A stretch of DNA of 64,000 bases from Mizuhopecten yessoensis (GCF_002113885.1 NW_018407082.1:762490-826489); one strand, 5' to 3'; counted from the stretch's first letter, positions 6,658-54,800 are shown. Program-made: numbers and translations. The notes: generated from the sequence alone by a model not told the origin.

Positions 6658-6818
6658 GGTTACTATAAAGACACTGTGGAATTCTTCTTTGAGAGTAGGG
6701 ATGAGTGTAAGATATTCTGGAAAAAATGTATCGAACATCACGCATTCTTTCGTTGTCATACCATAAAAAAGACGCCTAGAAACAAGACACGACTGGTCAG
6801 CCGAGGCTCCTCCTTCAG
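6658..6818 (+). CDS. FARP2: FARP exon: end of FERM C-lobe and start of FA domain ([11 protein letters not shown]...SRGSSF)
   Basis: tttccag|GGT acceptor; TTCAG|gtacgg donor; phase 0 to 2. Confidence 0.95.
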
Positions 6819-9800
6819 GTACGGTTGTGATGGCTACATCAGTCGGGTAACACATGGTGTTAGGAATACTTGTTTATTCTGTTTCCAATTGTACGAAAAA
6901 TTTCAATACTGTGTCTGTTAGTCCGGATAAAACGCAATGCAATCTACAATAATCCGAAAAACTCGCAAAACATGTTTTGGTGGTCTTGAAAACAACAATG
7001 CAGGCTGTAATAGTCTTTGAAAAATGGAAGCCACTTTTCAAAGAAAATCACAATATGGGGCTTTAATAGTCTGAGAAGCTAAAGATATGGACTCAAATAG
7101 TCTGTAAAATCCCAACATTGACACCAATAGTTTGGGAAAAGTATGTGTTGCAGAAATCATTCGTGATAAAAACAGCTTTGAGAAACATGGCTTTAATGTA
7201 AAGTTAAGTGTTATAAGAGTGTTATAAAAGAAAAATTGGTGTGTTGGATTGGTATCTAGATGAATCCTGTATATATACATGTTTGTCAGGGACAGACTTA
7301 TTATGTATGTAAAATAGTCCTTCAAAGTAGTTGTGTTGTTAACTGGTTGAAGGATTTCTTAACCTTATACATTGATAACTGTATGTGAATAGTGCTTACC
7401 TATACTGCTCGACTTAATTCTTAAATCTTCAAAAGATCAGCTCATTATTAAAAAAAAAACCTTCTTTGGAAAAAAATCATCGCGTCTTTAGACCGTGTTT
7501 TATTTCATGTACTGATGCTCAGATTGTTAGTTAAAAATATCCTCAATCCAAATATAGAGGGGAATGTCAACACTGTATGTGTGATACCATGACTTTGTTA
7601 GCCTGCCTCATCCTAGTATCCTGTGTTTGTGTACACAGGTACAGTGGCCGGACCCAGAAACAGCTGATGACCTACGTGAGGGAAACCTGTGTCAAGAGTC
7701 CCGCCTTTGAAAGGTTTGTATAATAACTATTCCGGGATAAGCGTCTGGACCGACATTCTTTTCTTCACCATCTAGTTGCAGCTTTTCTCGGGGAAACACC
7801 AGGGAAAGATAAATGGGCTTAAATTTTCATTTGAAAATGTGGTGATTGTAAAAACGTAATTGTAAATTGTAAACCTGCATTTTGAGTAGGATGAACAGTA
7901 GACTTTTCTGTAAAACTATGTGCGGATATTCACTTCAGCTTCAACTCATTCACCCCTGAAATTTCATAATGAACTTTTCCAACCTTTGAATTGAGAGATT
8001 TCAAATGTGTCTTCAGGGGTGAATGACTTAAAGTCTGCAAAAAGTGACTGGTGTGAAATGTTAGGGGTTGACACTGAAACTAGCACCGCAAACATACTGT
8101 GATGTCACCCATTTTTACCGGGGTTTTAATTTTATGTATTTCATAGGTAATTTTTATCTATGAATTCATAGGAAATAAACAATTCTCCATTTGCTCATAT
8201 TTCACAAATTCATGCACCAATTAAATTGTGTTTTGTCGGGAAACCCCGAAATTTGGGCCCCACGAAAATATCTGATTGTGCAGTAGTTTTAGAAAATTAA
8301 CAAGGTTATAACAGTATCCTTGTCACTCTTATTTTGTTATGTAGATGTTTTTCATGTCGAAAGAGTTGGTCTTAAATATAAATATCTCATAGAAAATTCT
8401 GTGAAGCAAAACAGAATTAAAGATTATATGTCTCATACTGTTCATTTCTTGAATACAAACTCTCACAAAATAGTTTTTTAATTTAAAGTGCAAAAATAAT
8501 TGGTCGCTGATTTACAAAAATTGTCCCCAATGCTCTATTTATATTCTAACTTCTTACTACTGTAGTATACTGTAAAAATTTCACTGTAGGTTAAATTTAA
8601 TTTTTCACCCTCTGTAATGAGGGAGAATTTACCATTATGGTGAATATAAGTAAACATTATTATGAACATAGCAATTTAATTTGAAGGGCGAAATAAACAC
8701 TGGGCGAAATAATTTTCATGAGCAAAGGGTGAAAATTTGATTTGGCAAAAATGTCCTGGTATACAGTATTTCTCGAGAGAGCTAACAATGTGGCAATATT
8801 ATTATAGTCAACAGAACACTAACTGTGATATAGGACAACACTGTAGATTGAAAACACTGTCCAAATCTTTGTCATACTATATTTGTTAGACCTCTCTGTT
8901 TGAGATTATTAGACTAAAACAATGACATCCTTGTTTTACGGGCTTCGCTTCACAGGACTAACACAAAGTAAGTTAGTGTTGTGACGGTATGCTGGTCGGC
9001 ATGGTAGCGATCACATGACCCATAGAGCACCATTGTAGACTCTGGAGCACTGTTGTTACGTGGAACTCATTGTTGTTTTGCGTGTATAGATAGACAATGT
9101 TTAGGATCGGTGTTGTTGTGTGTTTAGATAGAGGACACAGATGTTGTTGAATGAAAGAGCGAGGTCCGGAATCACAGAATCTGCAGTAAATGGTCAAAAA
9201 TGATTATGAAAGGATAAAAATAACTTTAAAGTAAATTTTAATTTTCAAAGGAAATTGTTGTGAAGCCATTTGTTAACCTATTTGAGAAAATTTTAGACAC
9301 AAATAAAAAAAAAATGAATGTATCCTGTCATCAGTGAACTTTTTCCCCGTGTTCTCGCTTACTAATTGCAATGAATTAAACACAATAAGATATCTTTACG
9401 TTGCCAATGCAGAACCTAAAATGTAGATCACACTAAGTTAGAGGTTAGTTCCTGCCATTTACAAAAAGGGCAATGAAAGTAGTATAGGTTTGTTGTATTA
9501 TTATATTTATTTTTTATGAAATTTTTAATTTATTTGAAAAGTTCCTTCACAATACAATGTATTGAATTAAAAAATGGACTTTTTATGCCCCACCATAAAA
9601 TGGTGGGGTATAGTGTTGCCCATGTCTGTCCCGTCAAACTTTATACAAAGGGGGCATTCATGTCTTTTAAACATATTCTTTTTAGGTCACCTGAGCTTTA
9701 GCTCAAGTGACCTATTGCTNAAGCTTTGTCATTTTTACCTTTGGAAACTCATTTATGGCCTCTAGATTTAGCAGATTAGCAACTGTATTGTTTTTCATAG

Positions 9801-12800
9801 AGTATGTATGATTCAGCAAAGAAGTTGAAGCAGATGTGTGTGTTGTTGCTGAGAGTGTGATAGATCATAGTTCATCCTTCAGAGGTTTAATTATGTAACT
9901 GTGTAATGGTAAATGCTGAGAGATTTACTTGTTCAATTGGTGTAGCATCAGAGGATCTTTGTTGTCGTTGTTAAGATTCACCCCTGAAGACACATTCGAA
10001 CTTGTCCAATTCAAAGGTTGGAATAGTTCATTATGAAATTTCAGGGTTTCACCAATCGTGTATATGTTGTTTAGTACCTGTAGTTTTAGGGTTTTGTAGA
10101 TATTTGTTTATATTGAGGTATTCATACACTATTGGTCACTGTTTCTACTACTAAACACCGGCAAGTAGATATGTAGTATTGTCATTTATATGAGACACAA
10201 TGTGAGAGACCTGTTTTGTGGAGTTCTGTAGAACTTAGATTCTGTATTAAGGGTCCATCAGAGGGGGAGGGGGAATGTCATCAGAGCCCCTTGTCAGTCT
10301 GAAATTACAGATAGAGATTAACATTTACAACATATCAAAGAATGAATTTTACAGGTTGAATAATTGGATTTCCTTTCCTATTATTTTCTATGTGTCATTA
10401 TGCTGTATTAAATCTCTGTGTATTATGTATATGCTGTAAAAATAGAAATTCTCGCCTATGGAATTGTTTGCATTGCGACTTTACAAAATGATTGGGGTTT
10501 TGGCTTTAGCATTGGTTCATAAATGTATATGTTATATAGTTTTATAATCTGCATAATTTATATATTTTTCTATAGAAATTTTCATGCCAATTTTGTCAGA
10601 AGGGAAGAACATCAGCATTGCCATGCTGTGATAATTTTAACTTTTACAGTATGTAAAAACTTCCAGCTAATACAGCAAGTTTTCTGCATCTTAGCCAATT
10701 TGACTTTGTTTTTGCTAACTGTATTGGATTTGTCTTGATATGTAGTAAGCTAAAAACTTTGATGAAGTCGAAGAAAAATACCATAAAACTGTTCTCATGC
10801 CTAAACTCAGATTCTGTGCTCATGTCCGATTTCTTGTTCAGGTGATAAATTGATAAAAAATATTCATTTTGTCAATGATCTGGTAGGAATTTTAAGACTT
10901 AGCACCAAATACCACTTTTAGTTTTTAAACTGGACTTTCTGACCTTGTCACATCATTAAAATGAGTTACAAAAATGTTGTATTGAGCACAGAATCCATGC
11001 TTGAACATGAGAATGATTTCATGAATATGAACCTTGTGTTCCTCATAATTCTCCCCGATGTAATCTTTGTACCTATTCTGTACTTTCTCGCCACCATGCC
11101 AACCCTGTGTTAATATACTTTAACTGTATATTGTAGGTCTGTCAGTGGGCGTATCTCATGTAGCCGGAGTGCCAGTGTTACACCTAAGATCTCAGCTAAG
11201 GCGGGGCTCCACAACTCTACCACAGACACTCACAACAGCACCGCATCCAGCGGCTCACACATCCTGTCCCCGGGGCTTGATGACCCGACCACACCAAGTC
11301 GCACAGAGACAGCCGAAGTCCACAGTGTGGACAGCTCGCTGTCTGGCAGTCGGTCACTCCCATCGCCAAAGCTTGACCGCAGCAGAGAGGGAACGCCTGG
11401 AGCTGAGGTTGACCTTCCCGATGACGATGGTGTGGCTTCCCCAGAGAGCAGAGTCGACAGAATCGACGAAAGAGGTGCCACTTCTACTTTTGTTACTAAT
11501 GCTATAGTATCTGCACCGCTAGATAGCAATCCTAATAATAACCAAAATGTGTCAGCCAATCAAAATGCAAATGACAATGATGAAAACAGCCAATCACAAT
11601 CTTTCTCTCTTTTTAAAGATGGGAAGGTTAAAAAATTAGATGAAAGTTCTATGGATACTGAGAATAATTTGTCTGCTACCTTCCCTACTAAACCACACCT
11701 AACCAAAGATATAGAGCATGTTAATAGTTCTGGTGAGGGACCAACAAAACCTAACCTCTCTAGTACAGATACTCTGCCCTCTAATCTTAAACATAATGTA
11801 CAAGATTCCTCCCCCGAGGGGCTGGGGACCTTTTCATACCAAAAGTCCCCAAACTCGACCCTCGGCAGGGAGCACAAAAAGGTTGTGTTTGCCGATGATA
11901 TTAGTTCCCATCCGACGCCAGGTAAGGTTTCTGAGGGGGAATGTAAGCAAGGCGAGATTGTCAAAGGTAAGAATAAACAGGAAACTGTTGTCAAGACAGG
12001 TTCTATGCATGTTAATGAGGAAAAGGGAAAATCAATCGGTCATGAGAAGCCATTAAGAAAATTAGTCCATCAAGACTCCGGAAAATCCTTGAGCAAGCAG
12101 GATAGCTTGACAAAAAAATCTACCAATCTTGAAAAAGGAGGAGGAATTTTATACAAGGGGGAAATAGTTTCCAGTTTCGATAGAAAAGCTGACAGGAAAC
12201 TGATGAAACAGGATAATGTAATAAATGAGGACATGCCAACAAACAAAGACCTGGCTACTGATAAGGCTTCCAAGAAACTGTCACACAAAGAGCTGGTCGC
12301 TGATAATACCTCTAGGGAACTACCGCAGAAAGAGGTTACCACTGATAATGTGTCGAGGAAACTGCCTCAAAGGGAAGAAGCCGCTGAAAATGTGTCCAGA
12401 AAGCTGCCACAAAGGGAAGAAGCCGCTGAAAATGTGTCCAGAAAGCTGCCACAAGACGTCTCCAGCGATAAGGCTGCTAGGAAAGGTAGTGTTACAAGGG
12501 AAAGTCCAGATAAAAAAGCAGTGCAACAAGAACTGAAGAAAATGGACAGCTTTGGTAAGGCTGAGGTCACCTATCCTAAACGTACTGGTAGCATAGAGAA
12601 ATTACAAAAACTTGACCTGAATACAGGAAGTGACGCAGAAAAACCTGTTAGAACCGAGAAGGAAAGTGAGGATAAATGTAAGAATGAGCTTAACAAGAAC
12701 AGGGGTGGAAAAAATACTGGACTAAATGGTGGGGAAAACATGATTGGGGATATACCATATCTCCTACATCGGCGCCACCTGGAAAAAAGCCCTGAACCTG

Positions 12801-15800
12801 TCAAAACAGAGGAGGTAACTTCGCCAACAGACATGGATGAGATCATATCGAACAGGAGGAGCAGAAGCTTGAAGAAGAAACGGCCGTCAAACATGCAGGT
12901 GCATCAGGTTAAAGTTTACGAGGGGTCTCTTCCTGTCGTACCGGACAAGGGAAAGACAGAAGTCAAATCTCCTGTGAGCGAGGGCAACAGTCCAGTCAGT
13001 CCAGTTAGTGGCGGGGGAAGTCCCTGTAGTGACACTTCCAGCCTGGGCAGTGTGGCAGGCAGCCCTGTTACTCCGGGGAGTGGTGTGGGCAGTCCTGTGA
13101 GTCCAGGTAGTCGAGGGGCCAGTCCCATCAGCCCAGGTAGTCGAGGGGCCAGTCCTATCAGCCCAGGTAGTCTACAACAGAGGATAGGCAGTCGTTCACC
13201 CTCAGGAAAGCGGGGATACCAGAGCCGATCCCCATCAGGTAAACGTACACCATCCCGAACGTCCAATGACAGGTCGCCATCTTGTAACCGGCGGATGGAG
13301 ATTGTCAATTATCACCGGCTGCCCCATAGAGATAGCTTCTCAAGCGTAGACGATACCACAAGTCCCACATTTGAGAAAGACATATTAAAACAGATTCAAA
13401 ATAAAGAAAACATCAAAGAAAATGATTCTGCATTTTCAGAATGTAACGGAGAGGTTATCAAAGATGGGACTACACTGCCCCCTCCACTTTCTGTAGCTAA
13501 GGTGCCACTGTCAAGTCATCAAGCTAGCGAGGATAATAAATCTAATAATAATCTAGAAATGGTGGAAGACATCACAGTTGTCCAAAATAAGCTTAACGAC
13601 AACCTGGAGAAGCGTCTCTCTGAGGACAAACTCGCTAGAAAGGAAGCAACAGGGTTGCCAACAGATTCAAAGATGTATGGCCTTCCTCAACATATAACAC
13701 AGCAAGTTCAGCATTCTTATAAGGCTACCAGTGATAACCCTAAAATGGCTAAGGCCAATAACCCTTCAGTAGTAAATGCGTGTCAATCTGGAGATGATCC
13801 AAAAAATGTCAGGTCCAGTAACCCTACGCCAGTCAGCTGTCAACCAGGAGAGAGGGGTAAACCTGGGGTATATATAAGTAGACCTGAACCTTCCAAAGTG
13901 GGTAGTGTACAAACCGCTGTCAACAAGACTTCAGCTTTCCATATGAAAAATCCTGATAAAAAAGCTAAGGAACCCTTTAGTCCTGTATATAGACCGACTT
14001 TTAGTTTGAAGCAGAGTAAAGACTCTGCTCTTTCTGCTCCAAAACAAGAAGAAACACAACCAAAAATCACAACAAAGAAATTAAACACCGACGGAAAAGA
14101 TAATACCTCGGTTCGCACTAAACCAGCTTTACCATGTCGAAAGCCTGCTTTACCAGGTAAAAAGCCAGAAATAATGAGCAAGAAACCAGCTCTACCAGGA
14201 AAAAGACAAGATCAACAAACTAAAAGGACGAATGCATCAAGAAAAGCTGATCAGGTGAGTTTGGATTTTTCATCCCCAGCGGCAGATTTTATATTATCAG
14301 AAACAGACTATGCAAGTAAACCCAATCGGAACAGCATTACATTTTCTACTTTTAAACCCCCAGACTCCAACTCAACATCGCCACGGCCACTCAGCCTAGT
14401 CAGTGTTGATGAGAATGAGGAGGAACCATCAATTTCACTTGCAGCCGACAAGGATCCTACGGTAAGGCTTAATCAGACTTTCCACGCACATCCTCCAGAG
14501 AATGTGTTCCGCCCAAGTCCAAAGCCAAAGCTGAAACTGGGGCGACACCCGAGCGATCAGGGCATTGAAGGTTCAAAGGTCAATGAGCCACGAAAGTTCC
14601 ACAAAGAACGTGGCTACATGTACAGTTTTGAGAGCGTCAATGATCCCCCTAGTGCTCAGATGTTTTTGAGTGGATCAACAGATACGGACGTCCAAGGAAG
14701 TCCAGAGAGTGTGGAGTCGGTGGATATGCTGGAACCTCTGGAAAACCTGGAGGAAAATATCTCTGATGGGTCAGAATCTTCGGTATCCGAAGGGAGCAAC
14801 TCAGAGTTTGGGGATGACAGTGAACACGAATGTGACAGTAGTGATAACGATGATGCTGAAAGACATAAAGAATTCTTACAATTTGCCAAAAGTTTAGCTG
14901 ACTCTGGCAAAGAAATCACAGTTGATTCTGGTGTTGGTATCGAGTTATCTGACTCTGGTATTAAGGATAATTCCCCGTTAGATCCTCTGGATCAGCTAGA
15001 GACTTTGGAAGGGTCGGTTTACGAGGATGAGAATCAAAACTTACCTCCACGCAATGACAATAATGGAAAAAGGCATTACACTAACACAACGTTAAGTTCA
15101 AGTTCGGATGAATCTTACCATGAGAGGATTGTTCGGAACAAGCGGGTAAGCGTGGACCCCCTGGAGAGTCTTGAGAATCCCCATATAGCAGAGCTGGCAT
15201 CACTTAGTGGAGATTCATATAGCGATGAATGTGATTCCGACGATCACATGACCTCCAGACACAGACTTGGGGCCGCCATTCCAATCCTCACCATCAGTAC
15301 TGCATCAAGTCCAGACGACCCTCACAGGAGCCCCTCAAGTTCCCTTGACAACGAAATTAGCCAATCAAATCCTTCTTAGATATATGAATTGTACAGTATA
15401 TTATTTGTTACGACATGATTACTCTTCTTGTAATTAGCATATTATTGAAACATGATGGAGATACAATTTTGTATTATATTGATTTCATTTTTGACTGCAG
15501 ATTTTTTTGATTTTTTAAATGTTTTTAGTTTTTGCATGATCAGCACAATTTAAGCATGAGGCGCTAGAAGCATTATATTTATACATAAAAATATACTATG
15601 TATATGTACATTTACATACATTTCGTTTTTTAATTTATCTTGTTTTGTTGTGCATGATGAAAGGTGCAATTTGTTATATTTTGCTGAAGTAGGGTTTTTT
15701 CAGTCATTTTGATTTACGTTTGTTTATTTCAGTTTTATTTACAAATGGATGTCCAATTTTGTTTACATATTGTTGAACCTTTTTTGTTGATATTTTAGAG

Positions 15801-18800
15801 ATCCCTTTTACAGTATTAATTGATTCTTATGGAATTAGTCCATGTGTTTATAATATTTACGCCAAACTCTGTGATTTAGGAACTAAACCAATAGATCAGT
15901 TATACAGAACGAAGGGATGTGACAAGCACTGTAGCTACTTCAAGTCTGTCATATAATTCTGTTACATTATGACCCTTGCTACTAGCTCTTTTTTGATTTG
16001 CTACAGATTTTAAAAACTATAAAATACATATACAATGTAGCTATATATGATTTTAAACTAACAAATAATTTAACAAAGAATATCTGATACAGTGTGTATA
16101 TGAAAAGTAAAAGGAGCAGGAAAGGGCCGAGGTGATATTTAAGGAATTCAAGAGAAAACTATTTTATCTCTTAGTTTTTAAACCATTAATGAAGACGGAT
16201 TTATACAGATTGAAAGATGGATGTGATTTACTTATATTAAGTTCAGGGTAAACCTTCGGGTGTCTTGGTGATGATCCAGATGTATTGTTATAGTTCTAGT
16301 CAGCACAGCTGTTTGAATTGCTGTGGTATACTGATGATGCCTAGTCAGCCCAGTTGTTTGAATAGCTGTGGAATTTTGATGATTCTAGTCAGCCCAGCTG
16401 TACGGACAGTCATTGTATTTTGATGGTTCTAGTCAGCCCAGCTGTATTAACAGTCGTGGTATTTTGATGGTTCTAGTCAGCCCAGCTGTATAAACAGTCA
16501 TGGTATATTGATGACTCTAGTCAGCCCAGCTATATGGACAGCCATGGTATTTTGATGGTTCTAGTCAGCCCAGCGGTATGGACAGCTGTGGTATTTTGAT
16601 GGTTCTAGTCAGCCCAGCTGTATGGACAGCTGTGGTATTTTGATGGTTCTAGTCAGCCCAGCTGTATGAACAGTCGTGGTATTTTGATGGTTCTAGTCAG
16701 TCCAGCTGTATGGACAGCTGTTGTATTTTAATGGTTCTAGTCAGCCCAGCTGTATGGACAGCTGTAGTATTTCGATGGTTCTAGTCAGCCCAGCTGTAAG
16801 GACAGTCATGGTATTTTGATGGTTCTAGTCAGCCCAGCTGTATTAACAGTCATGGTATCTTGATGGTTCTAGTCAGCCCAGCTGTTTCTATGCAGCACAG
16901 CTGGCTAGAATTATCATAATTAACACAGCTGAAGAAAAAAGTTTGTGATAATAACAAACAATTTAAAAATGTACTTACAATGTCCTCTGGTCCATAATGT
17001 AAGGGTGTAATATGCCATGGTATAAGCTGTTTAATGAAATTTGGAAAAAAGCTTGATGTTAGGAATTTGCCAATTCTAAGTAAAAAGAGATAAAAATTAA
17101 GGAGTTTCCCCTGTACATACGAAAGGAACATTATAAAGTTTGTTCTGTTTATGTTTTGCATTTGGTTCCAATATATAGTTTTCTGTTGTTACCAACACCA
17201 TGATGAGATAGCATGTGATACTTTGTTGATATTCTATTGAACGTTTACATAGCTGTATAAATAGAAAACTTGACACTTGTGGACCGGCGTCCCTTCAAGG
17301 ATTTTGGTTGTATGCTCACTTATTACTGAATTGGATGGCCAGTGTTTCAACAAGACATTTAGATATATATATCCATCTTATAAACAAATAATTAGCAAAA
17401 GCCTTCTGGTCTATATTGCATAACCTTACTTGTAGAATTGAATCATTTAAGTAAAAGGTCATTACATTTTAATATTTCATTTTTTCAGTTCTTTTATTTA
17501 GTTTTATAAAAGCAAAAGTTGAAATTTTCAATTAATTTTGTTTTATAGAAACATTCATCTAGACTTTGCCAGATGACTAAGGTACAGAAATGTGTTGGAG
17601 TGCTATCTTCTACTTTATTTTTAATTTTTTGTAAGCTATTTCCACTTTTCCTGATATTCTTCTAATTTTCTTCAATTCTGTTCTATCAGGAAATCTAGAG
17701 AGTGTTGACAAGTCAACTTGAAAAATTAGGGTACTTTCAATACTTATGAATATTTACAAAACACATTTGATGAATGAATGTCTTTATGGATTAGTAGCTA
17801 AAAAGGAAAAATTGAATTGAATGCAGAAACTTTCAAAATTCTCAAAAACAAACAAGAAAACAATAAAGACACAGTTTTCAGTTAAATGGCATCTTGTGGT
17901 GATGGCATTGGATCCTGTCAGATCAGGAATAGAGTATTAGTTGTTGATAGGGGATGGGCGATTCTTTGTCTGTGTTAAGGTACTTTCACCAGTATAACCA
18001 TAATGCTAGAATATTAGAAAATTTATACTAAATGTGATGCCCTTGAATTGGTTGCCTTTCAAGTAACGTTATTGCGTGAGATTGATGTCCTGTGAATTTG
18101 CCCGGGGAACAAACAATCAAAGTTTCTACATACAGAACTGAAGCACTACACTAATTATCAATGTACCGGAGCTTTAGGGTTTTACTGGAAAAACTTAAAG
18201 ATATAGACTCTTAACTTCAGTGATTCAAAAAAGTTGTTCTGATGAAGATTCAGAAGTTTGCCAGACTGCCTGAGTGCTGGCAAAGTAGATTGAAACCTAT
18301 TTTAAGTTTCCGAAACAAAACCTGTAATTAATCACTTTGTACCTGATACCCTTATACCCAGACAACAGTCGCACCGTAACACATTACGTCTATCGGTTAT
18401 GAGTTTACGGAGCTTTTATCATCTTGTATGTATGGTTTATGGGAGATAATTTAATGTCTTCTTCGTTTGAAAAATTGCCAATGTAAAAATGGATTTATGG
18501 CTGATGGAATTGTCCGGTATTGTAAACCAGTTCATCCTGGTCCGAGGTTTCATGGTTTACTGCGTCGTTGAGGACAGCCATGTTTAATGAGGTTGTCTGG
18601 GTTACGTCTTGTCTGACACTTTCAATAATCAATCATAATAAAATCGGATTGGTTCATTTCATCAAAATTGCTATCATAATCGTTTAATCAACAAATATTA
18701 CTAGATTACAGAAGCATACAAGGAAGAGATGCATGTTTAATTATTATAAATCAATTTTATTGTTGTAATATGTCACGTATAATACATTAGCGTATACTGT

Positions 18801-42800: not shown

Positions 42801-45800
42801 ACAACATAAGATATCTAACAACATCAAAACTATACATATAACAAAACAGAACATTTATAATGCAGATTGTCAATTTCAAGCAGTTAACGCCTGGATGAAT
42901 ACATCGCAGTGTAAAAATTCCGCGAAATGTTGCATAAAGGTGCTAGACAGATCGGACGAGATAGAAAAATCTAGCATGGGGTATGACGTGGTATATGACA
43001 GAGGTGCGAGAAAAACTAAACTGATTTTGTTCATCTGTTTAAATTGGCCCCTTTTGTGCAAGGACTAGAATAGAGACAGAAATAAAACTGGGCACAATAA
43101 CCTATTTTAGAGGATGGTAGACGAAGTCTCACTATATGGGGTAAAACAATAAAAAACAATTAGTATTCCTCATCCTTTTATTTAACTACAGGCTAACCAA
43201 ACTAATTGTGATAGAGAAATTCCTTCAAAACTAAACTCTCCTCCACTTAGTGTTTGACTGGATACTAGGATTAGAAATGAAATCAGGCCTCCAGACACAA
43301 GTAGATTTTGCTAGCCTTTGTACATGCCAAATTTAATAACAAATAGTTTTAACATTATTACCCCTCGCTGTATTTAGTCATCTCAAGGCATTACTACAAT
43401 AACCTTTCAATTGGAGAATTCTTATTGATCTACAATCAGTGGGGACTACTCTGTATTATTATTTCCTTTTCAAAGTTTTTTTTTTCATATCTGAATCTGG
43501 TTTGGGATTTAGATGGTAAGCTTACAGATTCTTTACAGAGGAAATAATTTAGCTGTTTCTGGGTTTTTTTTTAAGGACCAACCAGTAGGCCAAAAAGCTT
43601 GTAAGTGAGGAACATTCACAAATATAACACAGATATCTGTTTCAATAAAAATTTGGAAGATGTCCCTATATCCACTTGCACATCATCTGCAGGATTAGGG
43701 AGAACTCATTATATCATATTATATAAGGAGGGGAGAAGTCTGTTTTTAATTTTACCACAGGCCTAGACCATCTTGAGCTGTCTATAACATTTATATAAGA
43801 CAATGTAAAGTTTCTGGTCGCTTCGTTTCACAATTCTAAAAAACAGTAATTTGATAGAAGATAGCATTATTGCAGGTTTTGTGCTAAAAATAACTCTGCT
43901 CCTCTATACCTATTTGGATCAGATGTTGGTAATTAATGTCAGATGTCAGGAAAAGCTCCTTTTTCTAAAACAAATTCATACATATGTTTGTAGGGAAAGG
44001 TCAGACTGGTCTGAACCGTTTTTATAATTTCTTTTGCCATTATAGAAAATCAAATTCAATAGTTAATTAATTTCATAACAATGCTACATGATAAAGAACA
44101 TCAAAGGCTTTCTAAACGTCAGCATAGACATTAATATTAACTGGGGGGGGGGGGGGGGGNNNNNNNNNNNNNNNNNNNNNNNNNNNNNNNNNNNNNNNNN
44201 NNNNNNNNNNNNNNNNNNNNNNNNNNNNNNNNNNNNNNNNNNTTTTTTTTTTTTACATCTCTCTGAACCAGAATACCGTACAAGTGTATGAATTTCCACT
44301 GTAGCTCTTTTTGAAATTTTTGAAAATGAATTTTTACAAAAAATCAAAATCTGTCACCACATACCGTAAGATAAATTCCAGTATGTGCAGATGTCAATTA
44401 TATATAAGCTGGTGAACTTATTTCTTTATACTTGATAAATTATTCATCCTATCTATCTGGTAAACTGTTGCTGTCGGTGTGTTGTGTGTACAGAGTGGTA
44501 GCTGAGACAGACACACAGCCATATGTTATATCTGGAACTCTAAACACAGCCAGCAGGTATTCAGAAGATTACTAACAAAAACAAATAACTTACAGGCAAT
44601 CTGGTGTTTTTTTGTTTGGCAGCAATACTTTGACATGTTTAGATAACTTTTTACTGATAGAACTACAAGAAATCTTTAAAGTACACTCCAGGCTTGAGTC
44701 CTACATTAACACATGGTAAAGCAGAGGTGTTTTATTATAAGTGAGTGACAGAAAATATTAACTAAAATGAAAAAAATACAACCGTATTTTGGTTATTTGA
44801 CTTGATTTTCAGTAGAATTCAGTGTGGTGTTAAGTCCGCTAGAGTTATTTCCCTTTCGAAACATTGATGTTGGGGTAAAAAAATGAATAAAAATAAGTGA
44901 ACTGTAAAGGGCCCAAGTGTCAACTACAATTTCTTATTGTGAATATTTCAAAAAAAAGAAGACGGCTTAACACGAACCTCAATGTACCATTACTAATTAG
45001 GTCTTCTGTTTGTCTTTGTAATTTTGTATGCAACCTTTTAGTAAGCCCATTTGTTGCTTTTACAGATGCCCCGCCCCCATACCCTGGTGTGGGTCCAGTA
45101 CAGCAGCATCCTCACGCCCTTCGTCACACTGACAGGAAGTTATCTGCCCCTGTCTTAGGTTCACGGGACACAGCCCCGACCATGCCCAATGAGAACCGTC
45201 TGTCACGCTGTGACGAGGTGGAGAACATACCTGAGGTCGTTCAAGAAGAACCGTTCACAGATGACATTGTGTCTCATCCACCACAATTTCAGAGGTAACC
45301 AAGGAGACAGTTTAATTATACTCTTTTCAGTATCATTCCCACCTTTACCTGATTAACGGTAGGGTTTCAGTTCTCGCTTGGTTGACCTGGCATTAGTTTC
45401 TTTATAGACATTGTTCAATTTATCAAATTATAACCAAAAGGTCAAGGTCACAAGGTCAAATAAAGGTCATCTTCTATGATTTTGATTTTATTATCAAATT
45501 ATTAACATCATGAATCATATATATTAAAATGTAAATCTTAGTATGATTCTAGTAAAGGCATGAAATGTATGCGTTGTTCTTCCTCTTTCCCAGGAGTGCT
45601 ACATCGCCGTACATCGAACACGACCTAGAATCTCCACCACCCCCTCCCCCTCCGTTGGACCCTGAGGAGCTGGCCCTCAGTCCTCCATCCTTAAGGTCTA
45701 CCCCTAACAGGCAGCAGGACCCTGACTCCTCCCAGTCCATAGACGGTCACGGCCCAAGGAGTAATGTCAGCGTCCTATCTTCCTCGCGCACAGAGGACTC

Positions 45801-48800
45801 CGAGGATGATCCTAAGCGCAAAATTAAGGTTTGTATTGCTCAGATATCTGTTTTATGTACACTGGGAAATATGTGCGGCAGTTTAACTTTTGACCTCTCA
45901 GTGTTTGTTATGAGAGTGAGTATATCATGACAGCAAATATTGGTACAAAGCATACTATATATAGTAATTTAAGGTGAAAAGCGAAAGTTTGGCTTGGCCA
46001 AAATTTCCCAGTAGACAAATACTTCAAATGTGCTTTTGTACCAACTTAAATAGTGGAGACTTTATCATGAAAGTCCTACGATGGTCCGAATTGTGTCTTT
46101 TCCATACTTTTTCGCAAAACCATGCTTATTTTTAACTTTCATGAATTTCAATGAATACAATTTTAAAAAGATTGAAAATAGTGACATCTTACAAAATAAA
46201 TTGTGACCTGTATTTATAATCTCTCATCCAACAGCGACACCCTGCTGACCGAGCCTATTACATTGCCAAAGAATTACTGATGACAGAACGCACATATCGC
46301 AAAGATCTCGAGGTCATCACCGTGGTGAGTAGAAGACACAGTCTCTAAGGTGATGTCCAGGGTCATGACCACTGTCAAAAGGTCAAAGGTCATGACCTCT
46401 GGTTTTGTTTTATCGTGATTATATCTTGACAACCTTTGAGAAAACAATGTCTGATTTAAATTTGAAAGTGACTGATAGTAAAAAAGTAGTACCTGCTTAT
46501 CTAAGTTCGTTAAATATTGGAAATTTCCTAAATCAACTATTCAACTAGACATTGGAAGTTTTTTTAATCTTTTTCCTTTAATTGTATGTATTAGTGGTTC
46601 CACAATGCCGTTAGTATGGAGGGAGCTGTACCTGAGCCCACAGAAAACCTGTTCTCTGCCTTGGAGCCCATCTACCAGTTCCACAGCAAATTCCTCATGG
46701 ACATTGACCAACGTATATCAATGTGGTAGGTATACATCGTATCAGGTACCCCCAGTGAATCCTGGGACTGATTATATCTAGTTCAATTAAGTATATACAT
46801 GTACTGGCCCATAACCTTGACGTTATGCTTGTATAGGTACATGTAGTTTGAAATATGAAATTATTCATCAGCCTTGGTCAGTCCTGAAGTCTTACTTGCT
46901 GTAAAATGTTTAAAGTCCGGTCTAGCATTACTGGTACCAATTATAAATACAATTCTTGTGTAGATCAGGACATAACATCAACTTTTGGCAACCAGTATAT
47001 TTATTCAAAGAGATTTGTCATAAGAATTTAGATTTAGATATCAATGAAATGCCTGTGAATGTGTTAATTAGTTTGTATGGCATTTTAACAGGGAAGGAAA
47101 ATCCAATGCCCACCTGAATGGTGACTACCAGAGAATTGGAGACGTGCTCATGAACAACCTCCCTAAGGCTCTGACGGTAAGTCTTAAAGAGCAAATAGCT
47201 ACTCAACCTGGGTACACCTAGATTACAAGCCGCTAATTATAATACCTGTCAGAAAAGGAAGTAACTAAAGCATTTCTTTATCATTTTATCATCATATGAT
47301 TTATATTATATGTTAAATCAGTTTGCAGTTGTATTTTGTTTCAAACATAAAGAAAAGGGCATAAATACTGGCCTAAAATAACAGTGATTCCACTTTTGAT
47401 AAAATTTGTTATCTCTTTATTTCAGTGTTGCACTTCCATTTCATTTCTTTATTTATATTATGTCAAAAATGAGTTTGATAACATTTTTTTCCGAAAACAT
47501 AAAAAAAAAGGATAAAAAAGAGAAAAGTTCCTATTTATTGACAAAGATATTTTGGAAGAGAAGTTTAAAGTTGGTAGTGTTTATATTAGTCTGAAGCACT
47601 TAATTAAGTGCTCAGCTTCCTCAACTTTCAGCTTTGTGTAGAGAGATAACTGACTAAAACTAATGAAATGACATAGCTTAATAATTCTGTTGCAATTTGA
47701 TATAATGTTTTCAATATTAGTAAATGCTATTTAAAGATGGATTTGTTTTTATTGGAATGTTGGGTTAGTGTTTCCTGGTTCTTCATTACACCTCATTAAA
47801 GATAACTTAGACGGATTTACTTAATGAAACCATACTTCCATCTCCCACAGACATTGAAATCTTCCTTGTCTGATAAAAACATATTACCCACTATAAATCC
47901 ACTTCTTAAAGCCGACTAATTACCTGGGGTATTGATAGCTTAGAAGGATTCATTTAATGAACCATTACTACCGTCTCCAAAAAACAAGGAAAAGTTTTAT
48001 TTTATACACAATAAAGGTACGTAACGCTCGACTACAGGATGTTTCAATTATCATTTGAGAGTGTAAACACACTTTATTTAGTTATACTTCATTGTATATT
48101 TCCAGGTGTTTTATAAGAATTATTTAGATAAACAAGAGGGCATCCTGACAGAGCTGGAACATGCAGTCAAGAAGCAGAAGTCTTTTGAAAAGATGTATAA
48201 GGAATTTGAGTCACAGAAAGTGTGTTACCTCCCCTTGAATACGTTCATTCTCAAGCCAGCACAGCGAATCCTTCACTATAAGCTTCTCCTGGAACGTGAG
48301 TATGACACAGACAGTGGGTGACTGTCTGATAGCCAGTGTGTTTAAGTTCTACAATGCAACATTATAAAATTGAGTTTTGAAATTTTGGTTTGCAGGAGAA
48401 ATGGGTCGGGAGTAGAGATTACCAAGCTACTGGAATTCTAAATACTATGTTTCAGAATACCAGTAAATAATAACTGGTATATCCTAATATTATATCACTA
48501 ATAAATGCTATAATTTATAAAAGGTAAAATTACTGTTGGGAAAATGGCACTTTTAGCGTAAATTAAAACCAGCTCACTAGACAGAATGAGGAACATGTTT
48601 AATTTACAGTAATTTGGCGCAGTATATTGAGTTTGTTTACTTTGAATAGTGCTTGTTATGTAGAACTCGTAAAACTAGTGTTTTGTTTTGATTTCCAGGC
48701 CTAACAAAGCATTACTCCAAAGACCACCAGGACTATGCAGACTGTAATGGTGAGTAAGGCTATGATAGCCCACTGGAGATCTGTGAGTAGGGGGTATGAT

Positions 48801-51800
48801 AGCCCACTGAAGATCTGAGTTTCAAATGTAGGCTGAATGCAGCTGTATCATTGCGGTATTCACAGCAATATAAACCTAACTTTGATACCCAAAAAGATGG
48901 ACATTCACTGTTTCATAAACAGTCCTGTAGAATCCCTGTCTCCCTTTGTGCATACGAGGAATAACTTATATATAATCTCAACAACGAGTCTTTAGTACTT
49001 TTATCTCGTCAAGGCGATTCTTCAGACTCATCTAAAATTTCACATCAATAATATTAAGTAATCTGATAATGGATATAGATATATTTAGTAATCTAATATA
49101 GATATAGATATATTTAGTAATCTAATATAGATATAGATATATCTATATAGCTTTAATGATTATTTGACAGTTACTGTGAAACACCCTACAGTAAAATTGT
49201 GATTACACAGGGTGCTTTTAAAAATTTAAATTTCGCTTTTTATCTTTTATGCATGAATGATTATAATCTTGACCACTACGACCTTGATTTAGTAATTAAG
49301 TGTGAGACAGAGCATCCGTGTCTTTCAGACACATCTAGTTCAGGATTTTTTTTAAGGAAAATTAATGATTGCGTCAAATCATCAAAAGAAATTCAAAGTT
49401 CAATTTTCAACTACTGGTATTTTTCACAAAATAAATAAAATCATCAGAAAGAAATACCTGGTACATTCTTTTAAAATTCATTAATTTTCTGACCTTGCAA
49501 CCTTTGTTTGCAGCTGCCCTGTCCAAGGTGAACGCTTTGGTGACTGAGTACAAGGAGCGGATGAGAACACAGGTATGTGATCATCTTGGAGATAGTACTC
49601 CGGGTAGTTTCAGATTTAGTAGGAAACAGTTATTTTGATCTGAGGTGTCTTAACTGAAGTAACATTTCTTATTTTCACTGAAATATGATCTTCATTTACA
49701 TTTCGCCATGGAAAAAAGATAGCAAAAAATAAGCAGTTTAAAATTTCATTTGATTACATATAGGAAAGATTTTGTGAAAATATTTTTTCTTTGATACAGC
49801 TAGAAAGAATTTTCATCCACATGTATTAATTCTCTGAAATCAGTTGGTTTGGTGGTGCAATGGAGGGCACACCTACCTTTCACCCAGACGGCCAGGGTTT
49901 GATTCCCAGATCAGGTGTGAAAAAGTATGGGGTCACCTGGGAGGCAGGGATTCAAAATTGTACAAATGGTGGGGCTAACCCCCCGGGCTAAGGGGTGGGG
50001 CCAATAAAACGTATTACTTGGAAGTGGTTGAGATCCCCACCATATAACCATATATACAATTGCTGAGTATAAAGAGAAGAATGCACATTTGCTTCCAGGA
50101 TGTCCCTAGGGTCTGGCCCCACCCTTGGAGACATAGTCCCTGGGCCATAACTTGAAAACGGTTGAGATCCCCACCCCAAAACTATATATACAAATGCTGG
50201 GCATAAAGAGACGAATGCAATCATGATATCAGAATAGACCCTGGGGTCTGACCGAACCCCTAGGGACCTAGTTTCTTAGTCACAGCTTGGAAACAGTTGA
50301 GAGCCCCACCCTATAACCGTATATATACAATTGCTGAGTATAAAGAGATGATTGTACATATGCTTCCAGGTTGGCCTTGGGGACTGCCCCACCCTTGGAG
50401 ACTTAACCCCTGGGTCATAACTTCGAAATGGTTAATATCCCCACCCCAAAACTATATATACAATTGTTAGGCATAAAGAGACGAATGCAGTCATGATATT
50501 AGAATTGATCCCAGGGTCTGCCCCACCCTTGCAGACTTGGCCCCTGGGTCATAACTTTGAAACGGTTGAGATCCCCACCCCAAAACTATATATAAAAATG
50601 CTGGGCCAAAAGAGACAAATGCAGTCACGATATTAGAATCGATCCTGGGGTCTGGCCACAACTCTAGGGACCTAGTTACTGAGTCAAAGCTTGGAAACAG
50701 TTGAGATCCCCACCCCATAACCATACATAAAATTGCTGGGTATGAAAAATCTAATATAGCTATGCTACAAGGATTGGCCTTGGTGTCTGTCATATTCCCT
50801 TGATCTCATTTGGAGAATACTTTGCCATGATTGCTTAGGTATCCAGGTGAGCGATACAGGCCCTCTGGGCCTCTTGTTTAATACTACAAGTAAAGCAATC
50901 CATGCCCCTTGGTTATATAAGTTGAGAAAATAAAACAAGTTTATATAAAATGTTTCGAAACTAGATATCCACTGAAGTTTTATACTTACGTCATGGCTAG
51001 TTTGTGATTTTGAATGTCTAATTTTCAGGAGAACCTGCAGAAGCTGATGGAGATACAGCGAGATCTGGTCGGTCTGGACACACTCGTACATGTAGACAGG
51101 GTATGTTTATACTGAATTTTACCCAGTACTTCACTTATTTCAACAATATTATATTTTCATTAAAACCTCCATATTGGAGATTTCAATTACAAGTTTCCAA
51201 CTTCATATGTTCTGAAGTCGCTTTACATAATTTGTTTAAAGAAAATGAATAATTGTACTCTAAACAATATGCATTTTGATTGATTTTCAGATTTTCATTC
51301 GAGAAGGATGCCTTCAGAAATTTTCGAGGAAGGGATACCAGCAAAGAATGTTTTTCTTGGTGAGTAGATAGAACTATAACAGTACTGAAGGGACCATGAC
51401 ATGAAAAGGGTGTTCATAAATATCAACAATAATACATTTCAATTATTCAGTTATAGCAATCACTATTTATAGCTAACTCAATAGAACACAGTAATAAGTA
51501 TGTATTGGACATAATTCACTACAGAGCCTGATATCTAAGGGACAATTTCTTGTCAGGAGAAATAATATGACACTTTTATTAGCAAGTTCTCTATAAGTTT
51601 GTTTGTACAAAAATGTCTTATTTGATTTCCTACAATATTCATTAGTTCAGAATATTGTATTCTTTCGTTAGATCATTTTGTCAGATATTTGTAAAAGAAA
51701 TTTATTTTGACTTCACATCTTAATTCAATTTTAATTTGAAATTGTCTTTCTACAGTTTTCGGACCTGTTGGTGTACACCAGTCGGACAACTACACATCTC

Positions 51801-54800
51801 TTGCAGTTCAAAGTTCACGGCCAGCTCCCTCTACGAGGCATGATTGTGAGTAATAGGGAAGACATTTTCATGAGAAGATCATTAAATCGCCTTGCTGAGT
51901 TTATACAGTTAATGGCACATACATACCATAATTTACATATAATTGAATGCCGAAACTCAAAGATCAGAAACAATTAGAACCTTAACAATATATTACCTGG
52001 TAGTATTTGTTTGTGAAATAGTATTAAAGTAACCTAAAACATACATTTATATTCTCTCAGGATATTATTGAAAATTTGTTACATGGCGAGTGAGATATTT
52101 ATAAGGGAGGTGAGAAAAGGGCTTAATGTAGAATATAATGCTTATAATGGTATAAGAACAAACAAGGAAATATCTGTAAGACATGAGTTTCCCCAGAGGC
52201 ACTCTGGTGCTGAGTGTTGTCTTTGTGTGAACAATTTCTGTAAATAGCAATGGTGACCTCGACTTTGATCTTGTAACCCTGAAAAAGGAACTCATTGGAG
52301 GTATTCTCACACTTGACTAAGTTTAATCAATATCAGTTAAAAAATGAAGTTGCCAGATTGAAGTCACTGTGTTCATTTGAATATTTCTAAAAGTAGTGAT
52401 GATGACCTTGACTTTGACAATGGAACCCCGAAATAGGACCCCCCTTTCAGGTATTCCCATACTTGATCTTCATATAAAGTATGATTGTAATCAGTTAAAC
52501 AATAAGAGCCGCTAGTATCCTAACACAGAAGTGGGACTGGACCAGACAGATATGAGTAACAATACAGTACGTGTTCCTCTCATGAAATTGGAGGGGAATG
52601 AAAAAACATGTTTAAGTTTGATATTTCTAGCAGTTGCTATAACTACATAAAAATACATATTTCAAACATATTATTTTATATCTCGAGGATTGTCTTTTTA
52701 TACAGGTGGAGGAGTCTGATCATGCCAAGATGGCAGTCGCCAACAGTTTCGCAATTTATGGTGGCAACAAATGTATATTAGTGGCAGCTAGGTAAGTTGT
52801 GGAGCTGTCCATGTTACACACGAAGTGTTGTGAAGCTGTCCATGTTACACACGAAGAGACCACCTACCTGAGCACGCAACTCTTTCTTTTAGTGAAATCA
52901 GAACAAAGAGACACTTTATCTTGATCATAGATAGTTTCATAGTATTTGCTCGTAATATTGTCACAGGTGTGTTTGTACGCTAAAAAGAGTTAATTCACAA
53001 AATCTAGTGTTTTCATAAATAGATAAATAAATAAATATACAAGTATTACAACATTTGCTATAGCGCCCTTTCTAGCTAACATAAGCCACTCTAAAGCGCC
53101 TTACAGTACATAGATATACAATTTAATACAATGAATACAATTAGCATATACATTAATCATTACAATTTTGAGGAATTCGCAGGAGCTGCCTTATCAGGCG
53201 CTAACTACTAGTCCTATGCCACCTGGCTAATATCTCCCTATGTGTGTATGTATGCGTGTGTGCTGGAGATGTATTGACTGGTGAATCAAGAAAACATTAT
53301 GATATATTAAGTAATTCAAGAGTTTTGCACTACAGTCTGATAACAAATAATAAAAGTGAACTTATATTGTCTGTAGATTTCTTACAGATGATCATGTTTT
53401 TTAATGTGATAATTATGTTGAAGTTCTCATGTTAATGAATGTGATAATTATGTTGTAGTTCTCAAGAGGAAAAAGATAAATGGATAGAGGATCTAAATGA
53501 AGCAATTATCCAAGCCAAAAACAGGAACGATGATAAACTGAAGTATTCTAGTCTGAAATCCTCCACTAGTAAGTGTATTAGTCCTCATCTCCAGACTCCT
53601 ACAGTTAAAGTTTAGAAAAAAATGTGGTTCCCAAACTGGGGTCACTGGGAGCACCTATCTGGGAAAGAGTTTTCTCTTACCCTGGACAGGAGTATCCATA
53701 CTTTTCCCGGTGTGAGATATCCCTGTCTCACCGTAGGGTTGAGAGGGGTATGACGTCATGATCACGTCAACAATACAATGACGTTGCATCAGCAATGCAT
53801 CAACGTCACGTCAACAATGCATTTAGCCTTTTAACATTTACATAACATTGTGTATATGATACACAATGGGTGAACAGGGTAAGAGAAACAGAATCGTTCA
53901 CCCCCTTGAGGTGAGATTGGGAATCTCAACCCTCGGGGAAAGATTCCCCTATATATAGAGCTATCTCACCCCAAAGAGGTTCTGTTTTACTGTATCAAGT
54001 GAGAATGATTTGATCTTCATCTGCTTTAATTTTACAATCTTCACAATTGGATGGATTTTAATGACAATCTTTCGACAGGTTCATCAGAAAATGTTGAAGG
54101 TGAAGGTCAGAGTGTGGAGGTCAATGGATCACCGCCTGAAAAACAGATCCAGCACCGCGCCAACACCACAATGCATGTGTGTTGGCATAGAAACACAAGT
54201 GTTAGCATGCGGGACCACGACAAGGCTGTTAAGGTAAGGAGGGGCAGTTTATTTGTGGTTGTTTCTTTAAGGGTGTTTGTTACCTTAACTGTGATATAAT
54301 AGTTACACCATAAGAAGTCTTTGCTGATTTATAATAAGTAGTACTTTTGATTTGATCTGTTAATTAATGACATAATAATAACACTCCATTAATTCTGAAA
54401 ATTAAGTTATAGTATTGTAAGGAAGAAAATTCCAACACAACTCACAGGGGAGATAACACAAATCACAAGGGAGATAAACACAAATCAAAAGGGAGATAAA
54501 CACAACTTACAAGGTAGATAAACACAACTCACAGGGGAGATAAACACAAATCACAAGGGAGATAAACACAACTCACAAGGGAGATAAACACAATCACAAA
54601 GGAGATATAATGTTTACACAACTCACAGGTTTAAAGTGTTAGTAAGCTTCTATGTTTAAGTTGTTTCCAGTTCAAACACCCTGATTTCTTCTTAATATAG
54701 GGTAATGGTTGTGTAAACATCTGAGTGTTTTGCAACAAAATTACACAAAATATATATCTTGGTAAAAAAATTCCTCAAAGGTTTTTGGATGATGAAAATG

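Follow-up and report, generated by a model that had tools for sequence, protein, structure and literature searches.

A weak splice donor in a scallop FARP gene and a probable GEF-less FERM-FA isoform with a long conserved tail

A stretch of 64,000 nucleotides from the scallop Mizuhopecten yessoensis (GCF_002113885.1 NW_018407082.1:762490-826489; the whole stretch is called the window here, and positions are counted from its first letter) carries, judging from its domain matches, most of a bivalve FARP gene: FERM-FA, a linker, and the DH-PH-PH module of a guanine nucleotide exchange factor (GEF). Here, we propose that this gene has a second output. When a weak splice donor behind the FA exon is skipped, the gene very probably gives rise to a GEF-less FERM-FA protein in which a long disordered tail takes the place of DH-PH-PH. 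In the proposed mechanism, the exon that follows the FA exon would be a composite exon with an internal donor at 11474. Use of this donor would splice the RNA over 33.6 kb to the DH-PH-PH exons and yield the canonical Rho-family GEF. If the donor is skipped, the exon would extend for 3.9 kb to a stop codon ending at 15379, and the RNA would end some hundreds of bases further on. The read-through product of about 1,760 amino acids (aa) would consist of FERM-FA, the linker and a disordered tail of about 1,300 aa, which would hold conserved short motifs in a set order, together with a basic cluster and a single amphipathic helix. The choice between the isoforms would be set by a competition between weak recognition of the donor by U1 and 3'-end formation downstream.

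An initial annotation of the window had noted a weak phase-1 donor, GAG/GTGCCA (the slash marks the splice boundary), at 11474, and a frame that remains open for 3.9 kb into a 33.6-kb intron up to TAG 15379; both are present. The donor agrees with the consensus only from -2 to +3, with mismatches at +4, +5 and +6 and hence no G at +5. We propose that two demands hold it at GTGC, namely that it remains weak and that the same letters encode Gly-Ala in the read-through protein. The intron behind it (11475-45065) is 33,591 nucleotides (nt) long and closes with ttttacag before 45066. Upstream, translation from 11078 runs into a stop within the intron and then meets the acceptor tattgtag/GT at 11137. 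The segment open from stop to stop (11114-15376) holds 1,421 codons; 1,413 codons are open from the in-frame exon start (11138) to the TAG at 15377-15379, and 1,301 from the Gly codon split by the donor.

The runner-up among open segments of the window, both strands included, reaches 159 aa, and the longest open frame in 500 shuffles of the open reading frame (ORF) was 168 aa. The probability of 1,301 open codons arising by chance was estimated at ~1e-34 with the composition of the ORF itself and at ~1e-43 with that of the intron. The frame had been called very unlikely by chance, and a chance origin is indeed excluded. The tail has a GC content of 0.446, compared with 0.353 for the intron, and is strongly skewed towards A over T. 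Its amino acid composition (S, 14%; K, 9%; P, 8%; E, 7.5%; D, 7%) agrees with the annotated richness in S, P, K, E and D, and a Pfam search of the whole ORF returned no family at E<=1, in keeping with the annotated lack of a transposon-like domain. Three in-frame tandem duplications lie inside the tail, at 12342-12454, 13090-13172 and 14126-14166 (units of 14, 10 and 7 aa, respectively). They look young, and the first two sit where relatives show gaps in an alignment of the conserved parts of the tail (A1), from which it appears that the disordered spacers between conserved motifs grow by local duplication. In addition, the tail holds two consensus-like phase-1 donors, CAG/GTAAGG (11921) and AAG/GTAAGA (11966). 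On paper both are much stronger than the donor that is used, yet no junction from either was found in the four RNA runs described below; they may be suppressed, or rare forms may be hidden by the contigs.

Positions 10500-16250 were compared with one raw-read RNA run (X24) and with the Logan contigs of X1, X2 and X6 (three studies). The record of X1 states that it is RNA; for X2 and X6 this is a guess, and they were treated as RNA since both contain spliced contigs. The annotated splice from the weak donor to 45066 was confirmed: the canonical junction 11474>45066 was found in nine raw reads of X24 and in the contigs of X1, X2 and X6, and the sequence of the loose end behind 11479 is identical to that following 45070. 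This splice leads towards the DH-PH-PH exons. The linker exon was spliced at both ends in all four runs, the letters before 11135 being the end of the FA exon.

In X1, X2 and X6 there is also a second path out of the linker exon, with contigs that start at 11445, 30 letters before the donor. This 30-letter overlap with the exon was read as a fork of the assembly graph at the donor. The read-through contigs cover 11445-12397 (X1 and X2), 12425-15683 (X2), 12425-13566 and 13537-16077 (X1), and pieces up to 15564 (X6); in X1 and X2 the only breaks fall at the tandem duplication near 12400. Spliced loose ends (11479) and read-through contigs (from 11445 on) thus occur in the same runs. Transcript coverage contiguous with the exon at 11137 had been named as a check by the initial annotation, and it was found in X1, X2 and X6. 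The read-through depth in these runs was 12.6, 52.9 and ~6.5, compared with exon depths of 880, 157 and 76, respectively (1.4%, 34% and 8.5%). In all three, the depth of bin 11076-11267 equaled the exon depth times 133/192, which means that the last 59 nt of the upstream intron were at zero depth. Since the upstream intron is silent, the tail RNA does not stem from DNA contamination or general pre-mRNA and enters via the spliced exon. More widely, at least half of the ORF's words are contained in 18 runs, which come from 8 studies. At the 3' side, the depth of X1 drops from 12.6 to 0.69 past 16077, X6 ends at 15564, and the X2 contig ends at 15683 and resumes at 15780; contigs cannot show RNA ends.

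Several other elements were observed around these contigs. A 16-nt micro-exon lies at 24176-24191 (ttgcag/TAAATCTTTAAGTCAG/gtaaat), and is attached straight to 11474 in one X1 RNA contig, which extends at least 12 nt beyond the donor of the micro-exon. In the phase-1 frame it reads V-N-L-stop and would end the protein straight after the linker, as a poison or terminating exon. A probable interspersed repeat, abundant and transcribed, lies in the intron at 10791-11025; its RNA word depth is very high (~8,000 in both X1 and X2), and it is flanked on either side by many loose ends. A tandem array with a 44-nt unit (13.7 copies, 87% matches) occupies 16282-16885, shortly behind the probable 3' untranslated region (UTR) of the read-through isoform.

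Some observations weigh against the read-through isoform as proposed. No read or contig among the four runs joined the FERM or FA exons to the tail, and the exon side of the read-through contig measures 30 letters, where the bridging rule was 31. In X24 coverage of the tail was nearly absent, with a depth of 0.2-0.85 in three bins between 14532 and 15107, and the read-through isoform is therefore minor in that run. The X2 coverage goes on past 16250, and long intron retention is possible there. No AATAAA or ATTAAA occurs after the stop before 17862 (none within 2.4 kb); variant poly(A) hexamers are found at 15584, 16018, 16023 and 16106. The protein product is a prediction, and the oyster, mussel and snail models described below are automatic predictions that could arise from the long ORF alone. 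Nevertheless, the silent upstream intron, the 30-letter exon overlap and the FERM-FA-plus-tail models of relatives suggest that the read-through RNA carries the upstream FERM-FA exons.

The tail is conserved across molluscs. A word search with it led to 'FARP2 [Mytilus coruscus]' A0A6J8AKF9 (1,337 aa, an automatic model) and to unnamed ORFs. A0A6J8AKF9 comprises FERM_N/M/C, FA and a homologous tail, without DH or PH. Pairwise alignments ran unbroken from the exon start over the donor (ER-GA, hydrophobic-T-N, SANQN) and showed three conserved blocks with variable low-complexity stretches between them. Block 3 is 40% identical to Mytilus (E 1e-44 to 1e-47), and an SP-repeat expansion inside block 2 is lineage specific. 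When a profile of blocks 2 and 3 (A1) was searched against 1.84 billion representatives, 28 proteins matched at E<=0.001 and 22 at E<=1e-10, and the named matches were molluscs only. Among them, Ostrea edulis XP_048744410 (1,309 aa) and Crassostrea virginica XP_022338745 (1,298 aa) have the full FERM_N/M/C and FA followed by the tail, and Saccostrea cucullata XP_062582355 has the same FERM-FA-plus-tail architecture. The gastropod matches were Bulinus truncatus KAH9513865 (1,758 aa, FERM-FA plus tail), Biomphalaria glabrata and Haliotis. The motif order SGRIS, LHRR, SSVDDT, FSTFKP, DSGVG, DPLE was held, whole or in part, in most profile matches.

The relatives also appear to share the exon structure. 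In several unnamed ORFs, a pyrimidine-tract-like translation stands right before SGRIS, and in oyster contigs residues 345-1309 of the RefSeq model form one unbroken exon behind intron-like sequence; linker and tail thus form one exon in those relatives too. The donor AG/GTGC[CT] is shared by four bivalve lineages, being found in scallop, in mytilid contigs (L002/L003), in contigs L001/L005 of the P0007/P0008 lineage and in an oyster contig (L008). The region around 11921-11966 is not conserved in these alignments. Logan contigs of relatives (L001, L002, L005, L008-L011) are genomic or unspliced; they show the ORF intact and carry nothing on splicing. A spliced FERM-FA upstream of the tail was sought in them, and intron-like sequence was found instead in all. 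Two abalone models differ from the others. The Haliotis asinina RefSeq entry is a tail-only model under an unrelated name. Haliotis rubra XP_046568871 (P0065; RefSeq 'LOW QUALITY PROTEIN', 1,993 aa) combines FERM-FA, the tail, the canonical linker exon, RhoGEF and two PH domains, and joins the tail to the canonical exon three residues before the tail's stop; the model could be an artefact of annotation, or abalone could really have an insert-type isoform.

Checks of the ORF in relatives and of the ratio of nonsynonymous (dN) to synonymous (dS) substitution rates had also been suggested. The frame is intact in bivalves and gastropods, the motifs likewise being found in the latter, and the tail showed a dN/dS of ~0.15-0.18 across two pairs of relatives. 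For the close mytilid pair, dN was 0.020 and dS 0.109 in the tail behind the donor (908 codons); for the second pair, dN was 0.226 and dS ~1.5, a saturated value that makes the ratio rough. Within the species itself, the genome and the RNA contigs differ in the tail by 11 variants, 8 of them synonymous (third position) and 3 nonsynonymous, which gives a binomial P of ~0.002 at 0.27, the random expectation being roughly estimated at a quarter to 0.3. By these sequence comparisons, the tail is under purifying selection, that is, a selected coding sequence rather than intron noise.

No folded domain was found in an AlphaFold2 model of blocks 2 and 3, which was built on a 23-sequence alignment. 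The mean predicted local distance difference test score (pLDDT) was 43.7, 761 of the 888 residues scored below 50, and two short helices alone were predicted, of which the confident one spans model residues 713-730 (block pLDDT 77-87). A PDB sequence profile search with A1 gave no match, and an ESM Atlas search for look-alikes of the C-terminal block gave no usable match. The tail is best described, on this modelling, as a predicted intrinsically disordered region with conserved short linear motifs, and the basic cluster in block 2 could be a nuclear-localisation or kinase site. We infer polyadenylation of the read-through RNA, the full-length protein and its function. By analogy with FRM-3A and FRM-3B of Caenorhabditis elegans, the GEF-less form would most likely be a membrane-associated FERM-FA scaffold without nucleotide-exchange activity, to which the tail would add partner binding, localisation or phospho-regulation. 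Judging from the models of relatives, it would be longer than the canonical protein. The GEF-less FERM-FA product postulated by the initial annotation is accordingly supported by RNA contigs from three studies, by conservation and purifying selection, by FERM-FA-plus-tail models in Mytilus, Ostrea, Crassostrea, Saccostrea and Bulinus, and by predicted disorder.

Other explanations of the open frame were weighed against this one. The tail might be an internal cassette of a giant GEF isoform, spliced back to 45066 from a donor in or near its end and so inserted rather than swapped, as had been offered as an alternative with donors 11921 or 11966. The consensus-like sequence of these two donors and the Haliotis rubra model, which joins the tail to the canonical exon, RhoGEF and two PH domains, speak for such splicing; that model is, however, flagged as low quality, and no joint or listed loose end lies at 11921, at 11966 or near 15370 (11 further loose ends are unlisted). 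The X1 and X2 contigs run unbroken through 11445-12397 and over the stop into the 3' flank, the surroundings of the two donors are not conserved, and the C-terminus is conserved in scallop, mussels and oysters, whose FERM-FA-plus-tail models end without DH or PH. Thus, the suggested splice-back was not borne out and we consider an inserted cassette improbable; contigs can hide rare forms, so a minor insert-type form is possible. A slightly smaller chance is given to a separate gene that starts inside the linker exon or the tail (e.g., a 1,242-aa ORF from Met-172 of the open frame) and is not joined to FERM-FA. A gene caller does give a 1,242-aa product starting inside the tail (P0001), the link from the FERM exons to the tail is absent from the contigs shown, and the Haliotis asinina model is tail only. 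On the other side, the read-through contig holds the last 30 letters of the linker exon, the silent upstream intron implies that the RNA enters via the spliced exon, conservation is unbroken from the exon start over the donor in all lineages, and in oysters, mussels and snails the models have FERM-FA and tail in one protein.

The coverage might also represent un- or misprocessed pre-mRNA whose ORF is not made into a working protein, a reading that fits the minor share of the isoform in X1 (1.4%) and X24, the absence of a canonical poly(A) signal before 17862 and the lack of protein evidence. However, such nonfunctional intron retention is strongly disfavoured, and we hold it to be very improbable: the chance probability of a 1,301-codon ORF is <=1e-34, the frame, motif order and C-terminus are conserved in bivalves and gastropods, dN/dS is 0.15-0.18 with variants of 8 synonymous against 3 nonsynonymous, and the adjoining upstream intron has zero depth where the tail has 6-53. 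Least credible of all, and next to negligible in our estimate, is a mobile element or other gene inserted within the intron, as a long repeat-rich intron with the abundant repeat (10791-11025) and the satellite (16282-16885) might suggest. The tail DNA and the C-terminal protein block each gave one genome match (987.6 Mb searched); being single-copy by DNA and by protein, the tail is not a mobile element, and the multicopy element named as a possible refutation is thereby excluded. The ORF matches no Pfam family, continues the host exon without a break and in its frame, and is syntenic with the same exon in every relative. A mobile element is therefore refuted on two counts: the tail occurs once, and its fusion with the linker exon is conserved. 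A GEF-less FERM-FA isoform made by read-through is the explanation that we retain, and the features on which it draws are collected in Table 1.

Table 1. Features of the FARP locus in the window, with the evidence for each
Feature	Position	Strand	Basis
FERM C-lobe exon, both isoforms	6658..6876	+	tblastn of Mytilus P0005 aa 264-335, 74% identity; Pfam FERM_C
FA (FERM-adjacent) exon, donor AAG/GTTTGT at 7713	7613..7713	+	Pfam FA; 5' boundary approximate (start of tblastn match)
Linker exon, common to both isoforms, starting with the conserved SVSGRIS motif	11137..11474	+	RNA contigs 11135-11474 spliced at both ends; conserved in all relatives
Suboptimal phase-1 5' splice site, also coding Gly-Ala of the predicted read-through protein	11472..11480	+	Sequence; AG/GTGC[CT] conserved in relatives
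Read-through extension, 1,300-codon tail plus TAG (15377-15379)	11475..15379	+	ORF; RNA contigs 11445-12397, 12425-15683, 13537-16077; single-copy
Conserved block 1, right behind the donor (G-A, hydrophobic-T-N, SANQN)	11474..11587	+	Aligned with Mytilus, oysters, P0007/P0008 lineage
Conserved block 2 (IPYxLHRRH, basic cluster, SRSPSG, further motif)	12716..13405	+	Invariant columns, alignments A1 and A2; also in gastropod Bulinus
Conserved block 3, C-terminal, ~360 aa (ERGYxYSFES, EFLxFAKSLAxSGKE..DSGVG, KRxSxDPLExLE, IPxLTIS..SSPD)	14246..15319	+	Alignments; profile matches
Sole confidently predicted tail helix	14849..14902	+	AlphaFold2 on A2
Probable 3' UTR of the read-through isoform	15380..16077	+	RNA contig ends 15564 (X6), 15683 (X2), 16077 (X1); putative 3' end
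Next exon of the canonical GEF isoform, linker going on with DAPPPYPG	45066..45294	+	Acceptor ttttacag/AT; RNA loose ends
DH (RhoGEF) exons, canonical isoform only	46220..49635	+	Pfam RhoGEF on exon pieces
Exons of two PH domains, canonical isoform only	51264..56491	+	Pfam PH on exon pieces

The surrounding gene has the makeup of a FARP gene: FERM is followed by FA, a DH domain lies downstream in the same gene, and two PH domains come after the DH. The domain searches were made with exons taken one by one, not with a joined protein model. Pfam FERM_C (32.6 bits, 6637-6918) and FA (36.6 bits, 7535-7720) both scored over the Pfam cut-offs; the N and M lobes of FERM are located either further upstream than the matched part or beyond the window. 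RhoGEF scored 43.1 bits on 48082-48318, with sub-threshold matches of 16.5 bits (46220-46345) and 16.0 bits (46595-46726) in profile order. The second PH domain was matched at 27.1 bits (55752-55937) and 20.3 bits (55039-55236), and of the first PH domain the C-terminal end alone was matched (53448-53612, 13.9 bits, sub-threshold). A run of N at ~44.16-44.25 kb lies ~0.8 kb upstream of the 45066 acceptor; the whole window contains 212 N.

FARP proteins have been studied almost solely as exchange factors for Rac and Cdc42. Worm genetics, in turn, indicates that the FERM-FA half suffices to organise postsynaptic receptor scaffolds. If a GEF-less isoform whose tail of 900-1,400 residues is under selection is maintained in molluscs by the exon logic of C. 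elegans, the scaffold output of the FARP locus would look ancient and important, not a worm oddity. Database proteins labelled "uncharacterized" or misnamed would gain an identity, and the conserved motifs (the basic cluster, the SSVDDT acidic-serine patch, FSTFKP and the amphipathic helix) would become candidates for partner binding. In addition, a conserved weak donor that doubles as Gly-Ala codons could serve as a model of how a splice site and a poly(A) site compete under regulation.

The closest known system is C. elegans frm-3, the nematode FARP orthologue. FRM-3B consists of FERM-FA, GEF and two PH domains, and FRM-3A is a GEF-less FERM-FA protein whose C-terminal part has no recognisable domain; the GEF isoform is produced by alternative splicing within the last exon of the GEF-less isoform (PMC7260190). 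Clustering of GABA-A receptors was rescued by either FRM-3 isoform or by FERM-FA alone (PMC7260190; see also PMC9632837), and by itself the FRM-3A C-terminus localises to the nucleus (PMC7260190). The scallop FARP gene would follow the same composite-exon logic. It differs in that the mollusc tail has its own conserved motif set, with no nematode among the named matches of its profile (28 matches; the tails were not compared directly), and in that function has been tested in the worm, whereas the mollusc side is known from sequence and RNA.

As a presumed instance of a composite terminal exon or intronic polyadenylation, the scallop locus has the familiar weak internal donor and an extension that stays in frame up to a stop of its own, and in X1 and X6 the contig coverage drops or stops some hundreds of nt past that stop. 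However, its extension is unusually long (1,300 codons), is conserved across molluscan classes under purifying selection and has no canonical hexamer near. Orthologous models are already in the databases: 'FARP2' A0A6J8AKF9, LOC125657718 (Ostrea edulis), LOC111134196 (Crassostrea virginica), LOC134244094 (Saccostrea cucullata) and Btru_031589 (Bulinus truncatus). They comprise FERM-FA, the same linker and a homologous tail without DH or PH, and are named 'uncharacterized protein', hypothetical or 'FARP2', not a GEF-less FARP isoform. Thus, the arrangement itself is already known from C. elegans frm-3 and the molluscan case is new, namely a tail that is mollusc-wide, selected, expressed and fused to FARP through a conserved weak donor.

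Vertebrate FRMD7, whose closest homologues are FARP1 and FARP2, likewise combines FERM-FA with a unique C-terminus, and its large last exon (exon 12) starts at about residue 351, just behind the FA domain (288-336) (PMC3163398). Like the read-through product, it has no GEF module, and its last exon sits where the scallop composite exon does. In contrast, FRMD7 is a separate gene rather than an isoform and at 714 aa is much shorter, whereas in scallop one transcription unit also includes the downstream DH-PH-PH exons, to which the shared exon is spliced. No vertebrate was found among the named matches of the tail profile (28 at E<=0.001 among 1.84 billion representatives). We tentatively suggest, as a conjecture that we rate as rather doubtful, that the protostome or bilaterian ancestor already had a two-output FARP locus, which made a GEF and a GEF-less long-tail isoform through a composite exon directly behind the FA exon and is still used by molluscs and nematodes, and that FRMD7 is a duplicate that kept the read-through exon only (subfunctionalisation). 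If true, this would explain why the FRMD7 C-terminus lies in one large last exon behind FA and why both FRM-3 and FRMD7 bind CASK, and it makes an origin hypothesis for FRMD7, a human nystagmus gene, directly testable.

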